Source: Ginkgo biloba (taxonomy: Eukaryota; Plantae; Ginkgophyta). From it: DNA of 20,967 bases. The stretch lies in the NCBI GenBank assembly GCA_024626585.2, contig JANKJI020000001.1, positions 1,206,385 to 1,227,351 of the forward strand. The letters are read 5' to 3'. Shown here piece after piece: positions 7,801-20,967 of this stretch (position 1 is the stretch's first letter; each line of letters starts with the position of its first letter). The position numbers were made by a program, and so were the translations under genes. The notes beneath the pieces are model-generated. The model was not told the DNA's origin. It saw only the letters and a program-made list of their open reading frames with translations, and made no database searches.

Positions 7801-8239
7801 TAGAGATATGTCATTAATTTGTGATATAGCATTGACATAGGTTTCTCAAGATATGTGAATCCAATGTCCTCTTTGGCATGCGTGTGACATAAAAAAAGCA
7901 TGGAAATGACTTTGTATCGGAGGTATAGAATAAATCGAAACTTGAATTTGGAAATAATGAAGCAACACGGTACTCATGAAAAGAGAGGGGGTGAAAGAAA
8001 GAAAAAAATAGTACCATTTATTCTTTCGTGTCTCTCTTCATGCCTCAAATTCATGTAAAAATATTTAAACTACTTGCTATGCTTTTAGAGGTCAGCCGAT
8101 ATATATTTCATTCACCCACTAACGGCTTATGACAGCCTTCCTCTACAGGCCGAACGAACGAGACCAAAAAAAAAAACTAAATGTGGTGGAAGAACTTGGC
8201 TTGCATTTGGGCAGGCAGTTCCAACATCCAAACCAGATA

Positions 8240-8510
8240 CCACGTGCGCCAATTAGAGGAGAAAGAACGGGCTGTGGACCCACGTGCACAGGACACAGAC
8301 CGACTAACAATCCCCCCGCACTTGCAACATTTTCATTTATTTCTTTTCTGCACCATCATTCCAACTCTTCTCTCCAATAGACCAAACCAAATATCCAACA
8401 CTCGGAGTATATCGCATGTGCAATGGGGACTAAGGGATTTTTCCTATTAGCACAGTGGGCGGTGCGGTCTCTGCGGCTTCGAAGGCGGGGTTGAGCAGAT
8501 ATAAATAAAA
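8240..8510 (+). promoter_or_regulatory. Putative GDH proximal promoter
   Basis: G-boxes CACGTG at 8241-8246 and 8281-8286, CCAAT at 8249-8253, TCP-type GTGGACCCAC at 8274-8283, TATAAAT at 8500-8506. The region is CpG-rich compared with its flanks. Confidence 0.55.
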
Positions 8511-8647
8511 TTAATGGGTTACATGTCAATGGATCGAACCCACGGGACTCTCTTTGTTCTTTAAGACCTTGTTTCCAATAAGTTGCGCCAATACCAATAG
8601 AGGACCAAGAAGAAGATGTGCTGATAGGTCAAGGTTTAACTGTAGCA

Positions 8648-9200
8648 ATGAATTCGTCAATGGACGAGATGAATCTCCTTCAGCAGGCGCAGAGACACCA
8701 CTTGGTAGTTCGGGAAATGGGCGAGGAGATCGATTTGGAAATGGGTACCGGCGATGACGATCCCACTTTTGGGCACACCACCCCCACACTTGTAGGGATA
8801 CCCCAAGACCACCACCAACACCACCACGCCAATGAACAGGAGGAGCACAAACAATTGATCATTGTGGGAGGGCATCCAGAGCATCAGGATTTGGGTAAGA
8901 TGCAACAGCCCAGGAAAAAGAAGAAAGTGGTCAAGAAATGGAGGGACGAATGGGCAGATACCTACAAGTGGGCTTACGTCGATGTCTACGAGGGCACTAC
9001 CCGAATTTTCTGTTCTGTTTGTAAAGAGTATGGCAGAAAGCACCGTAGAAATCCCTATGGAAACGAGGGCAGTCGGAACATGCAAATGAGTGCGCTTGAG
9101 GAGCACAACAACAGTTTGCTTCATAAAGAGGCCCTTCGCCTCCAATTGGCTTCCAAGGATAAAACCATTTCTTCTGTTGAGAGGCCGATCTATGTCAAAG
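8648..9200 (+). CDS. GDH4: NADP-specific glutamate dehydrogenase (plant GDH4-type), coding exon 1: N-terminal extension with NLS and zinc finger
   Basis: ATG at 8648 gives MNSSMDEMNLLQQAQRHHLVVREMGEEIDLEMG...KKWRDEWADTYKWAYVD...FCSVCKEYGRKHRRNPYGNEGSRNMQMSALEEHNNSLLHKEALRLQLASKDK...IYVK, which I recognise as the N-terminus of plant NADP-GDH. Donor AAAG|GTCAGT at 9200/9201, phase 1. The ORF-track start at 8618 is a GTG. Confidence 0.93.
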
Positions 9201-10350
9201 GTCAGTATTATAACCATCCTTCTCCTGGTTTTTACTTTAATTCCACGCTATCAAAACAATTCAAACCATAGTTGACATCAACAGCAAAAGTTGTGAAATT
9301 TTAGGCCCCAAAACAGTAGAAATTGCTTAGGGTAATTTAGGTTCGAGCTCTGTTTTTCTAGCCATAGTTCTTGATCTTGATATTATAAGCTTGAAAATCC
9401 CTTCTCGGTCAACATGCTTCAAAACAGCAATGCATATATGTTTTCAAATTTGAACAGTTCAAAATTATATCAATGAAGTGCGGAAATTGCATTGGGCAGA
9501 TATTCAGTTCCCTCTCCTATTTTGCCATACCGTTCTAGTGCTTCTGGGTCATGTGGTCTTTTTCATGTCATATTTATTGCAAAGGATCCTATGTGGCAGG
9601 AATTGCAAATGCTCTCTTTTGAAAAATTGTATTTGTTTGGATTCAATTCTGAGTTTCTTTCTCCAGCTTTTTCCAAACATCCATGAACTTAGTCATCTTT
9701 AAATGCTAGAGGTAGGCCAACTGCAGCAAGATATCCATATATGTTATGATTGTTGCCTGTCTGAGGATGATTTCTGGGTTATTGGTGGGATTTGATATTT
9801 TCAATTTCTTTTGCTTCAGTGGGCTTAAGGCGTCAAATTTGACAAACAGGCACAAATCCTCAATAACAAGGCCTTTTGTGAATACAGCTTGTCATTTGCA
9901 AAATCAATTGCAATATCCTCCTTCACATATCTCTAAAATGAGAATACACATTAAGTTCTATACAAATACCACCCTTATTTTGAAGTGCAAAATTGACCTT
10001 CGTTTTCATTTGAAGGCAATTTTTTCCAGCCCTTTTAAGCCCAGTAAATGGCCTGGATCATCAATTGAAGATTCCCTACTCTAAGAAAATGGGACTGTGA
10101 TGGTGGTATGTTGGTGTTAGTTTGGGGATTTGGCTAAGGTTCGGCTCAATTAACAAGATCTTCTGCCAATGGATGAATTGAGGCAATCTGATTCCATTGA
10201 CCTAGCAAAACCGGAGTAAGCACCATTCTTTTGCATAGATCCCAGATTATNNNNNNNNNNNNNNNNNNNNNNNNNNNNNNNNNNNNNNNNNNNNNNNNNN
10301 NNNNNNNNNNNNNNNNNNNNNNNNNNNNNNNNNNNNNNNNNNNNNNNNNN

Positions 10351-10790
10351 CATTGTTGAGGATATCAACTCCTTGTTTGTCAAAGGATCACCAATTGTAT
10401 TTAGTTGATTTTTAATCTATTTTATGTGTTGAATGTGATCTACCATCTCCAAGCTTCTAACTATAAACCTTCTCATGAAGCATGGGGGATCTAGCATCAT
10501 TATTTGTTTCATACAAATTTCTAATAGCATGCCATGCTTCCTTTGGAGTGGTGATATCCTTCACATTCTCAATTATATTCTTGTTCACTACTAAATTAAT
10601 TAATGCAAGTGCAACCCTACTTCTAGCATCATATTATAATTGCAATTTGGTTTTAATAAGATCTCTTACTGTAGTTCCATCCACAAATGACCATAAAACA
10701 TTCAATAACAATAACTTTCTTATTTAGTGTTGCCATGTGCCATAATGTTTTGCACCAATAATTTTTCCTATGGGTGCACTTAATACATTG
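10351..10790 (-). mobile_element. Ty1/copia gag remnant (UBN2/Retrotran_gag_2-like)
   Basis: Minus strand reads HYGTWQH*IRKLLLLNVLWSFVDGT...ALALINLVVNKNIIENVKDITTPKEAWHAIRNLYETNNDAR...IKNQLNTIGDPLTNKELISSTM, the typical copia gag pattern. Confidence 0.8.
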
Positions 10791-11504
10791 CCACTAATTG
10801 ATTCCATCATGAAGTGAGATTGGCTCACATGAATAGAAAAAAAATGCATAAATATTTACTCCAAGTGCACACTAACACCACATAAACTATATAAAGGAAT
10901 TAGAAGATTCCTCATCACACCAAAAAATATATCTTTTTATTAATTTTAAGTGGTACAAGGGTTGCAAATAGCCTTAAAGGCTCAAGGATCTTTTACAATA
11001 TTTTTTTTAAATTTAAAAAAGAAAATAACTTTTTTTCTAAGGTCTAAAAATCCCTTTTTACAAGATAAAAAAGAATTAACTTGATCCTTATTAGTCAGTC
11101 ACTAGTCACATGTGAACAAAAAGTAACACAAAAAAAAATATTAAACCTTCTAAAGTTAAGACTTTAGGAAGAAATTATTTTTTTTTGTGAAAATTGGAGG
11201 TGGTGGCCTGCATGCCCGATGCTTCTCCTTCAATCTGATTTCTTCTTCGATTTTGATCAATCAGCCTTAAATTCAGCTTCGTCAATCCTGGTATGCCTTT
11301 GAGCGACTACCTTCTATGTCAAGTACGACTGTGTCAAGCCTCAAATGGTTGTTCAAATTGTCTTCTTTGGCTATTGTGCGTTTTCCTTCTCCCATCCACA
11401 CTTGCAACTTCTCTTTCGACATTTTTCTTGGCATTGCCCATTCCAATTCATGATTTTGAATCGAGGGTGGGCTCTCTCTCTCTAAATCATGATCACATAC
11501 CATA

Positions 11505-11662
11505 ATTAATATGTTAAAAGAACACCTCGTAATGCACAAATGCAAATGAAACAACAAGCTGATCAACATCATATAGAGCAAGAATTTTAAGTCAGTGACT
11601 GGGTATATCTGCCTCCACAACCATATAAGCAAACATCTGAAAAAAAATCCCATAATGAGAAA
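11505..11662 (+). mobile_element. Ty3/gypsy (chromovirus-like) post-integrase-core fragment
   Basis: LKEHL../NAQMQMKQQADQHHIEQEF*VSDWVYLPPQPYKQTS matches the AQ.RMKQQAD.HR....F.VGDWVYL.LQPY.Q motif. Confidence 0.8.
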
Positions 11663-11786
11663 NNNNNNNNNNNNNNNNNNNNNNNNNNNNNNNNNNNNNN
11701 NNNNNNNNNNNNNNNNNNNNNNNNNNNNNNNNNNNNNNNNNNNNNNNNNNNNNNNNNNNNNNACAAAATGCGGTTTCTCAGCGTAG

Positions 11787-12470
11787 TCATTTTGCCCTAC
11801 ACCAGATCTTGTTTAGGACTTTATTCGATTTCTTATTAGTACTTTCAACTATGCCATTGGCGTGAGGATAAAATGTTGTTGATTTCCAATGAATAATCAT
11901 AAACTCTTGTGTCATGAAACTCACACCTTGATTACTTACTATTTTGATCGGGCATTCAAATGAGTAATGATCATTTCTTAAATGAAGCGAGNNNNNNNNN
12001 NNNNNNNNNNNNNNNNNNAAGAGGGAGGGCCTCAACCCATTTGGTGATATAATCTATAGCCACTACTATATATTTGGCTTGTGTTCATTGGGTTGGAGGA
12101 CTAATTGGTCCTACAAATTCGAGGGACATTGGGCCAATATGGGATGTAAGGGTTGGTGATGTATTGCATGTGGTTTGCCTACTCTTTAACATACATCAAC
12201 AGCCAAATTCTCTTCATCCTTAAACAATCATGGACACAATAATTCAGCCAATAGAATCTTCCAGGCAGTGCTGTCGCTACCCATATGCCCTCCTGCTACT
12301 CCTTCATTGGCTGCTCAATTACACAATGATGTAGTACATGATTTGGCCCTAATCAATATAACACCCGTTCACTCAATTGATATGGTTCAACATGTCATGC
12401 TAGTTTTGACATTTTGTGCGATCTAGTTTGGGAGGCATTATTATGGTGGCCAAATATTGCACAATGACTT
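11787..12470 (-). mobile_element. Ty3/gypsy integrase remnant (non-chromovirus-like)
   Basis: Minus strand: NEGVAGGHMG...TAWKIL, FVGPISPP...KYIVVAIDYITKWVEA, PIKIVSNQG, HWKSTTFYPHANGIVESTNK. Confidence 0.9.
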
Positions 12471-12479
12471 TTTCTTTTT

Positions 12480-12884
12480 CTCCAGTATACGCCTTTCTTT
12501 GGGACAAACTTTTGCAATATGACTTTACTCAAAACAATTATGACATCAAAATGGGGCTACATAATCTATCTCTTGTCTCCATTCATAACGATTGACATTA
12601 AGAATAGTTTCTTGCATCATTCTCTAGGGAAATTTCAACACATATTCTTGCATACGCTGCACTTTTGTTCTCTCTTATAGCTTTAGGGATGTGCAACGTC
12701 TTCCCTAGTATATAACCCATGTCAGACAATTCTTTCATCCTAGTATTCTTGAGGGAGTCTAGGGAACCTGACCTGAGTCTATGCCTCAAATATTTTATCT
12801 CCTGTTTTTGTTTGTTTCTTTTTGTAAGCTGCATTGTACTTGATCTGGGTGTAATATGGTATCTTTTGGTGTAATAGCATATTT
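12480..12884 (-). mobile_element. L1-clade LINE ORF1 remnant (DUF4283 C-terminal region plus zinc knuckle); may extend to about 13400
   Basis: VRFPRLPQEY*DE, MGYILGKTLHI...AAYARICVEISL, WRQEIDY, and a CX2CX4HX4C knuckle CHNCFE*SHIAKVC at 12545-12504. Confidence 0.85.
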
Positions 12885-13958
12885 NNNNNNNNNNNNNNNN
12901 NNNNNNNNNNNNNNNNNNNNNNNNNNNNNNNNNNNNNNNNNNNNNNNNNNNNNNNNNNNNNNNNNNNNGATTTGGTTGTCTCTGTCATTATTCTACATCA
13001 CGTTTTGGGTGATGTCGCCTAGGATACGTGATGTCATACCCATTAAGTCTGTAAAGGTTTCAGTTTTGGATCTCAACGTGTTCTAGTGAATCCTGATATC
13101 CTCTTGAACAGGAGCTGCTTCTCGACTCACCCTATGAACCATAGAATGTCTGCTGCTGCTGTCTTTCATGCTTTATTGGTGCCTTGACTAAAAGGTGTTC
13201 TATTTTTTGCGACATTAATAACTTCTCTTTTTTTGGGCAGTGCTAATTATTACATAATTTGGATCTGTGACATAGTTTTGGGAAGAGAGCCCTATAGTGT
13301 CTGGCTCTTTGTCATAGCTCATAGCCAGCTCCTTGGGTGCACCTTCTGATTGCATGCAACAATAACATTTGGAGTGTTGAAAGTCGAAATAAATCCATCC
13401 ATTGGGCGCAATAAAATTAAATAGAAGTTTCTATCAACTATTTTTTTTTTGGAAGGATCCTCTGTTTGGTTGGGGCATCCTCGCAGAGCACTTCTATCTC
13501 AGAGAAGGTGATTGAGTGTAGTAGGGTGCGAGATTATCTTGTAAGTAATAGTNNNNNNNNNNNNNNNNNNNNNNNNNNNNNNNNNNNNNNNNNNNNNNNN
13601 NNNNNNNNNNNNNNNNNNNNNNNNNNNNNNNNNNNNNNNNNNNNNNNNNNNNTCTTGTAAGTAATAGTGGTGAGAGTTTCTTCCTTTGCATTTTTCTGGT
13701 CTTCCTTTTCTTGCCAAATGCAAAGCCCAAATGTACATAAATGTTGTGTTTGCTTTCTTTCTGTATTTTTGGGTTGCTGAGTTGTATATTTTAAGTACAA
13801 TTGAAATGAGTGAAATCTGGTTACATTATTTAGCTTATGTAGATGAAGTTAAAGGATAGAGTATGATATAGTTTTGAAAATGACTTTTGAGATTCTAAAC
13901 ATATGGCTGATATTGGTGGGTTTGACTGTGCTATTATTACCTAAATGGATTTCTAAAG

Positions 13959-14088
13959 CACTTCTGTGTAAAAGTGCCGAATCCATTGTGGAAGCTGTGA
14001 TAAGGAAGGACCCTCATGAAGTGGAGTTTATACAAGCGGTACAAGAAGTAGTGCATTCTCTAGAACCAGTTCTCTCCAAGAGCCCACA
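13959..14088 (+). CDS. GDH4: NADP-GDH coding exon 2 (start of GDH dimerisation domain)
   Basis: G+CA restores Ala, then LLCKSAESIVEAVIRKDPHEVEFIQAVQEVVHSLEPVLSKSP, the GdhA-like P.E.EF.QAV.EV motif. Acceptor TAAAG|CA at 13958/13959 matches the phase of exon 1. Donor CA|GTAAGG at 14088/14089, phase 2. Confidence 0.92.
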
Positions 14089-14258: not shown

Positions 14259-14542
<284 letters not shown>

Positions 14543-20570: not shown

Positions 20571-20967
20571 ACCTAATTTTGAGATAATATGCTACAATCC
20601 CTCAGGAATTTGTTTTTCTAATTGTAGGATAAAAAATGAGAGGTTGGTAGGAAATACCACTTATTTTACATATATTAATAAGAAAGGGGAATATTCTATT
20701 ACCTCTTTTGGAGTGATTCAATCATCCCACAAGGCTTGGTGGAGCTTAAAATTCTAATCCTTATGATTCTTCTTGATGGTCCTCTTTAGGATTCTAATCA
20801 AATTTTTATTTGTTTCTTTAGCCAACCCATTCTGTTATGGATAATAATTTGAGGATAGAGATAAGAAAATATAATAACTTTTACTAAAGTATATTATTTT
20901 GGTTGATACAAAGGCTAGGCCATTATATGATATCAAGGTTGTAGGTACCCCAAAATAGGGCATGATT

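Follow-up and report, generated by a model that had tools for sequence, protein, structure and literature searches.

The Ginkgo biloba DNA analysed here, a 20,967-nucleotide stretch from the forward strand of contig JANKJI020000001.1 (positions 1,206,385 to 1,227,351; hereafter the window), carries the 5′ end of a seed-plant GDH4 orthologue, and the gene is a further member of a known family of plant glutamate dehydrogenase (GDH) proteins. Its first exon encodes an acidic motif, a lysine-rich stretch and a zinc finger of the zf-C17orf113 family, followed by exons for a GdhA-type dehydrogenase body. The basic stretch and the finger are the best-conserved part of the GDH4 protein. Sequences from public databases point to a fusion that is conserved across land plants, and what is said below on the identity and the evolution of finger and fusion is in our judgement almost certain.

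Exon 1 and the three elements within it occupy the following positions of the window.

8648 to 9200, forward strand: exon 1 of the GDH4-type gene, with its ATG at 8648, 184 codons plus one base, and the donor AAG/GTCAGT at 9200/9201 in phase 1.
8660 to 8770, forward strand: acidic N-terminal motif, residues 5-41, consensus MDDMNLIQQAQRHHLVVRELGEEIDLEIGPGDDDPSF.
8909 to 8938, forward strand: basic cluster PRKKKKVVKK (residues 88-97), which fits the pattern for a monopartite nuclear localization signal (NLS).
8939 to 9154, forward strand: zf-C17orf113 finger module, W98 to residue 169, Pfam PF25431.

Residues 106-169 match PF25431 (zf-C17orf113, 'C17orf113 probable zinc finger') with a score of 89 bits (cut-off 29.5, E 1.7e-25) and span model positions 1-62 of 63, a result far beyond chance. 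The module opens with W98, W102 and W108 (W-x3-W-x5-W). Its predicted ligands follow in the order C-x2-C, x27, H-x5-H, with F121-C122 at 9011, C125 at 9020, H153 at 9104 and H159 at 9122. The initial annotation of this DNA had placed the basic stretch, tryptophans, cysteines and histidines at these positions and had referred the finger to a C17orf113/ZNF862-type family. Translation and residue indexing reproduce its coordinates exactly, and both the Pfam name and relatives that carry DUF4371 and a hAT dimerisation domain bear out the family. That annotation had also proposed checking the two cysteines and two histidines for conservation. An alignment of 61 relatives (A1) shows no variation at W102, C122 and H153 and conservation of at least 90% at W108, C125, G141 and H159, so that every ligand falls in one class or the other; all 61 sequences match PF25431. 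A BED finger (PF02892) was rejected as the identity of the module, since the window finger has no match to that family and only one of the 61 relatives reaches even E 0.068.

The dehydrogenase exons that follow were located downstream of a long first intron.

9201 to 13958, forward strand: intron 1, 4758 bases, with several N gaps.
13959 to 14088, forward strand: exon 2, the start of the GDH body, reading ALLCKSAESIVEAVIRKDPHEVEFIQAVQEVVHSLEPVLSKSPQ; placed by tblastn alignment to the Euphorbia lathyris orthologue P0008, donor CA/GT at 14088/14089.
14259 to 14306, forward strand: 5′ part of exon 3, interrupted by a 10-N gap at 14307-14316.
14317 to 14398, forward strand: disturbed stretch, unreadable as assembled, adjoining the 10-N gap.
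14399 to 14488, forward strand: coding piece ending in FLGLEQ, with a PF02812 match and the donor CAG/GT at 14488/14489.

The acceptor AG of intron 1 lies at 13957-13958, and the single G at 9200 joins CA across the junction to give alanine. The spliced reading ...PIYVK-ALLCKSAESIVEAVIRKDPHEVEF is collinear with the uninterrupted, full-length P0008 (...PIYVKALMSKTAGTIVEAALRRDPHEVEF), and the exon 1/exon 2 junction is in phase, consistent with the in-frame splice to a GdhA-type enzyme that had been proposed for this locus. The exons of the window were searched one by one, with full-length database orthologues standing in for the whole protein. Positions 14381-14488 match PF02812 (ELFV_dehydrog_N) with 31.6 bits against a cut-off of 25.3, which places the N-terminal dehydrogenase domain in the window. 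The NAD(P)-binding ELFV_dehydrog domain, present in the orthologues, was not found in the window up to position 20967.

The order seen at this locus, with acidic motif, KKKVVK, zf-C17orf113 finger and GdhA-type body, is also that of GDH4 in flowering plants. P0008, of 637 amino acids, comprises PF25431, PF02812 and PF00208. Scored on the finger region, a word-indexed search gave 373 proteins, and the 120 of them that were listed are all from flowering plants and mostly named NADP-specific glutamate dehydrogenase. The finger and a GDH family occur together in the precomputed Pfam annotation of 119 of these 120, and the remaining one was counted as an orthologue by sequence identity. Among the matches listed is a 637-amino-acid 'amino acid dehydrogenase family protein' of Arabidopsis thaliana (P0166), which we take to be At1g51720. 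Likewise, an Atlas cluster of 840 members, all from Streptophyta, has PF25431, PF02812 and PF00208 in 100% of its members. Because this architecture already stands in public Pfam annotation, the pairing of finger and GDH is not new at the database level.

Whole exon 1 is about 70-72% identical to the N-termini of flowering-plant GDH4 proteins, and identity rises to about 80-85% over residues 85-184, which hold the basic stretch, the finger and the linker. The window protein differs from its flowering-plant counterparts in a variable spacer, which in Ginkgo is rich in histidine and glutamine. Logan contigs of 2-3.8 kb encode proteins of 625-636 amino acids with all three domains, and one metagenome contig (L004, 2481 bases) holds the entire reading frame without introns. 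Since such intronless, transcript-like contigs encode the whole fusion, the finger exon is evidently spliced to the GDH exons in the RNA of relatives, and we reject for the same reason the idea that gene prediction has artificially fused two genes. The database orthologues and the Atlas clusters thus agree with the initial annotation that the extension is common to other plant GDH4 proteins. Its further statement that bacterial and fungal GDHs lack the extension also holds, in that solved bacterial, fungal and protist GDHs do not begin before about residue 180-206 of plant GDH4.

Conservation within the family is highest in the part that GDHs elsewhere do not have. Among 134 unique GDH4 N-termini, conservation reaches at least 90% at nearly all positions between residues 91 and 170, KKKVVK included, and likewise in the GEEIDLE core of the acidic motif. 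KKKVVK is moreover invariant in 12 of 12 diverse GDH4-type sequences. In pairwise comparisons among flowering plants the basic stretch and finger are 86-97% identical, against 65-84% for the GDH body, a difference that points to stronger constraint on the finger than on the enzyme part.

Solved GDHs align with plant GDH4 over the full length of its body (E 1e-119 to 1e-140). The GdhA-type NADP-GDHs used for comparison, from Plasmodium (3r3j, 2bma), E. coli (3sbo, 4bht, 4fcc) and Corynebacterium (5ijz), share the SDFDPKGKS and EGANMP motifs with plant GDH4. However, these enzymes have no N-terminal finger, and they keep the motifs GGGKGG, GPYKGG and AGDIGVG, which are altered in the flowering-plant proteins. 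A gapless alignment to Plasmodium GDH 3r3j sets LGGAAGGSDFDPKGKS in the flowering-plant protein against MGGGKGGSDFDPKGKS in the enzyme, and P0008 reads LGGAAGG, GPCRGG and SEEMGVG where 3r3j reads MGGGKGG, GPYKGG and AGDIGVG.

These replacements are general in a survey that covered P0008, P0079-P0093 and P0117-P0235. None of the 116 flowering-plant sequences that show the GG..GG motif has its lysine, which is replaced by alanine or serine (68 GGAAGG, 25 GGSSGG, 23 GGASGG). GPCRGG is found in 105 of the 105 flowering-plant sequences that show that motif, and most orthologues read SEEMGVG, the aspartate of AGDIGVG being glutamate or another residue. The Ginkgo gene itself reads GPCRGG (14414-14431), with an arginine codon (14423-14425) at the position of the GPYKGG lysine. 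We take the GGGKGG lysine to be the active-site lysine (motif G-G-[SAG]-K-x-G, PROSITE PS00074), the GPYKGG lysine to be the residue that holds the substrate side-chain carboxylate (K89 in Clostridium symbiosum numbering) and the aspartate of AGDIGVG to be the catalytic aspartate. In the titles of papers cited in PMC4079599 the clostridial lysines are described as essential or catalytic, as are E. coli Lys-128 and the aspartate. With such changes, a non-catalytic or altered role of GDH4 is plausible.

One lineage departs from this pattern in a way that orders the events. Metagenome contigs from a plant-like eukaryote (L002, 10028-17319; L003; L005, 9809-17105) carry a finger exon together with GDH exons that keep LGGAKGG, GPYKGG and LGDIGVG, and their finger exon ends at the same point as exon 1 of the window. 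The extension therefore lies in a single 5′ exon both here and in an independent lineage, as had been described for the window. Because the finger and the canonical motifs occur together in this lineage, the fusion is older than the active-site changes, and the role of the finger would be independent of the loss of catalysis.

The state of the Ginkgo copy itself is a separate matter, since exon 1 is intact and the GDH body cannot be translated as assembled. The disturbed stretch has 82 bases where codons for FRVPW...NRGFRVQ would be expected. An FRV codon triplet (14352-14360) sits there in another frame, 35 bases stand in place of the 51 found in relatives, and a TAG at 14378-14380 lies in frame with the next coding piece. 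Moreover, tblastn with P0008 found no further GDH exons up to position 20967, and a metagenome contig (L011, 223-731) holds a GDH4 finger exon decayed by stop codons and a frame shift, so pseudogene copies of this exon do exist. On these grounds the gene could be decaying or mis-assembled. However, exons 1 and 2 and the piece at 14399-14488 are open and conserved, and the lesion adjoins a gap, in a stretch of assembly that holds 20 N runs, which makes a local assembly error at least as likely as decay. The disturbance may thus be an assembly fault beside the gap or a lesion of this copy. The remaining GDH exons could lie beyond the window or inside a 939-N gap, as the long introns would allow. 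We consider a damaged copy possible but on balance improbable. In two flowering-plant-like contigs, GDH4-like genes stand as two tandem copies (L006, 10-6538 and 9686-17790; L008, 3-5594 and 9686-17268), the upstream copy being cut in each case by the end of the locus.

Other features of the window are few. An antisense open reading frame of 186 amino acids (8657-9217, reverse strand) overlaps exon 1 and is probably a by-product of the conserved coding strand. The G+C content rises to 0.46 at exon 1 and over the preceding 600 bases (8001-9000) and is mostly 0.22-0.38 in the other 1-kb bins of the window, with 0.115 in one bin, the binned values being depressed further by N runs. Eight open reading frames were queried against Pfam, six on the forward and two on the reverse strand, and the seven other long ones (58-147 amino acids) had no match. 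A by-eye impression that the introns hold retroelement fragments is unsupported, as these reading frames are without Pfam matches.

To place the finger among its relatives, HMMER was run against 1.84 billion representative proteins, yielding 78 matches at E <= 1e-3 that fall into three tiers. The first consists of 13 matches at 81-87% identity, which are N-termini of plant GDH4 proteins, the full-length P0008 among them. The second (P0017-P0020, 41-45% identity) contains what look like small stand-alone finger proteins, and the third is a tail at 25-42% identity. In that tail the finger of P0063, P0073 and P0074 (735-741 amino acids) spans residues 71-139, and DUF4371, the hAT dimerisation domain Dimer_Tnp_hAT or both come after it.

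The hAT-type DUF4371 proteins (C17orf113, ZNF862, ZMYM1, FAM200/ZBED5 and GTF2IRD2-like) share with GDH4 the Pfam family, the N-terminal position of the finger and the signature W..W..FCxxC..GS.N.Q.SAL..H.xS..H, and often a basic stretch directly upstream of it. Their identity to the window finger is only 25-45%, and they carry DUF4371, RNase-H-like and hAT dimerisation domains, whereas GDH4 has none of these. GDH4 is accordingly not a hAT transposase, as P0008 contains only PF25431, PF02812 and PF00208 and GDH exons follow the finger in the window. The finger also sits on non-transposase bodies in PRDM11, which has a PR/SET domain, and in an arthropod BTB 'tramtrack-like' protein, with template modelling (TM) scores of 0.65-0.71 between predicted folds. 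In these two fusions the partner is a chromatin or transcription domain, whereas in GDH4 it is a metabolic enzyme fold. Because the other homes of the finger are hAT-type, PRDM11 and BTB proteins, the comparison supports its reading as a transposase-related, nuclear-type module.

Several further architectures were seen among the relatives. P0017-P0020 and the gene at L001 685-1317, the closest non-GDH relatives of the finger, appear to represent small stand-alone proteins of 210-295 amino acids that have a basic stretch but lack any transposase domain. One such gene adjoins the condensin gene NCAPD3, with no GDH exons on the fetched stretch. A look-up of the stand-alone P0018 in the ESM Atlas gave no match. 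A protein of the limpet Patella vulgata (P0016, 1526 amino acids) has seven tandem zf-C17orf113 fingers and a weak DUF4371 match, and another (P0049, 541 amino acids) joins the finger to Ty3 capsid/gag domains.

From the single sequence of exon 1, AlphaFold reached a predicted local distance difference test (pLDDT) value of only 35, whereas modelling from the alignment of 61 sequences gave a mean pLDDT of 71. In the alignment-based model a beta-hairpin ends at C122, a short helix starts from C125, and two helices bear H153 and H159. Ten ESM Atlas clusters match it with TM scores by query of 0.61-0.81, and PF25431 is among the commonest families in eight of the ten. With predictions on both sides, clusters of streptophyte GDHs match at 0.73-0.81, and clusters of hAT-type proteins (plant ones included), ZMYM1, FAM200, the BTB fusion and PRDM11 match at 0.61-0.72. 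A further cluster, at 0.67, is named 'TTF-type domain-containing protein'. The initial annotation had expected a structural match to TTF- or BED-like fingers. The predicted clusters lend the TTF label indirect support, but no BED or TTF finger appeared among solved structures.

The basic stretch PRKKKKVVKK fits the monopartite NLS consensus K-K/R-x-K/R, as a pattern only, and the first ten residues of the AlphaFold model have a low pLDDT of 52. A basic cluster lies no more than 14 residues upstream of the finger in 29 of the 49 non-GDH relatives, and because it is so widely shared the lysine cluster may equally be a DNA-contacting arm. The acidic motif at residues 5-41, which may also be written ...LVVRELGEEIDLEIGPGDDDP.F, has a spacing (V-x2-L/M-x3-I-x-L) that we presume to fit the pattern of a leucine-rich nuclear export signal. 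An organelle transit peptide is an unlikely identity for this N-terminus, which is acidic and conserved as a motif. A published in-silico table from 2026 lists no transit peptide for an orthologue and gives the localisation of the Capsicum orthologue as 'Nu/Mit' (PMC13259437). This in-silico call is the only statement on localisation found in the literature searched.

We propose the following history and mechanism. An ancestor of land plants would have joined an exon for acidic motif, lysine stretch and finger to a GdhA-type hexameric dehydrogenase. The basic stretch would carry GDH4 into the nucleus. Like its N-terminal counterparts in hAT transposases, the finger would bind nucleic acid, most likely DNA, and the dehydrogenase body would act as a hexameric scaffold that binds NADP(H) or metabolites more than as a bulk ammonium-assimilating enzyme. 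Taken as a whole, this combination of fusion history, nuclear finger and scaffold body is the best explanation that we can offer, and we judge it about as apt to be right as wrong. The nuclear, nucleic-acid-binding mechanism by itself is proposed by analogy with the other finger proteins and falls somewhat short of an even chance.

The initial annotation had suggested that GDH4 may be a nuclear, possibly chromatin-bound sensor or supplier of glutamate, 2-oxoglutarate or NADP(H). The idea of a sensor rather than an enzyme gains support because flowering-plant GDH4 lacks the active-site lysine, and we infer that a ligand-sensing or scaffold role could fall to the GDH hexamer. Carried furthest, the proposal would make seed-plant GDH4 a nuclear regulator and not an ammonium assimilator, that is, an NADP(H)-binding hexamer held on DNA or RNA through six fingers, perhaps also binding a 2-oxoglutarate- or glutamate-like ligand. 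In early land plants the fusion would then have started out as a nuclear enzyme with GDH activity, and catalysis would have been lost later. This fuller version is speculative, and we think it rather improbable as it stands. A conceptual parallel exists in CtBP/ANGUSTIFOLIA, where a dehydrogenase fold that binds NAD(H) has been turned to nuclear regulation. CtBP, however, belongs to the unrelated D-2-hydroxyacid dehydrogenase fold family, lacks a finger and depends on partner proteins for its recruitment.

Several observations weigh against a nuclear scaffold with a DNA-binding finger, and they are shared out between two rival explanations. The first holds that GDH4 is a working NADP-GDH and that its N-terminal extension serves only to regulate, stabilise or target it, without a nucleic-acid role. 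A rice study in which recombinant OsGDH4 served as a control reports that this protein aminates as an NADP(H)-GDH and cites 12.4 mM as its Km for NH4+ (PMC6776155), and these kinetics are real counter-evidence to a dead enzyme. In addition, P0008 retains the NADP-binding GSGxxA motif, much of the pocket and most of the fold, with E 8.8e-140 to a solved GDH, and the lineage of L002 and L005 keeps all canonical residues examined beside its finger. The exon with the GGGKGG lysine position lies outside the window.

A working enzyme is nevertheless hard to reconcile with the absence of the GGGKGG lysine from every flowering-plant sequence that shows the motif, with arginine in place of the GPYKGG lysine and an altered AGDIGVG aspartate, and with a finger that is more conserved than the enzyme body. 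The rice kinetics also have to be read with the expression host in mind, as OsGDH4 was produced in E. coli BL21, a strain with an NADP-GDH of its own (PMC4079599). The initial annotation had described the function of the extension as unsettled, in keeping with a 2020 review that calls the catalytic activity and function of GDH4 'still not clear' (PMC7733991). Weighing these points, we find it unlikely that GDH4 is simply a functioning NADP-GDH. No paper describing the finger or the active-site changes was found in the literature searched, which omits most subscription journals.

According to the second rival explanation, the finger binds RNA or a protein partner and not DNA, and GDH4 acts in RNA metabolism or in a protein complex. 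Sequence searches of the Protein Data Bank (PDB) gave no relative of the finger (best E 0.88, a chance match), and Foldseek found no solved structure in the PDB at E <= 0.001. The exhaustive VIA-align comparison placed the model nearest to C2H2 fingers of TUT4, SF3a subunits and TUT1 (Z 6.0-4.8), all RNA-associated, with lower scores to U1C, JAZ and ZFa. These best solved neighbours are of the U1/matrin type, whose members contact RNA or protein. The H-x5-H spacing is usual in this class, and the near-invariance of residues 99-166 suggests a large, fixed interface. However, Z values of 3-6 lie within the range that the tool calls common for unrelated folds, and the family occurs by sequence in hAT-type proteins and, from the fold search, in PRDM11 and the BTB fusion, where a DNA-binding finger would be expected. 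We therefore regard RNA or protein binding as unlikely, and retain DNA as the most likely target of the finger in the proposed nuclear scaffold.

Plant GDH4 is routinely listed with the genes of nitrogen assimilation and is treated as an 'NADP-GDH' when expression is studied or a control for kinetics is needed. That name may mislead, because the best-conserved part of the protein is the finger with its lysine stretch, the active-site lysine is lost in flowering plants, and at least one lineage keeps both finger and active site intact. What is new here is the top conservation of the finger, the lost lysine, the GPCRGG of the Ginkgo gene and the lineage that combines the finger with a canonical active site, and the finger and active-site results make the role of GDH4 directly testable. 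If the proposed reading is true, GDH4 would link carbon/nitrogen or redox state to gene expression, and the family would show cleanly how the gene of a metabolic enzyme can capture an exon for transposase DNA binding and retain it over hundreds of millions of years.

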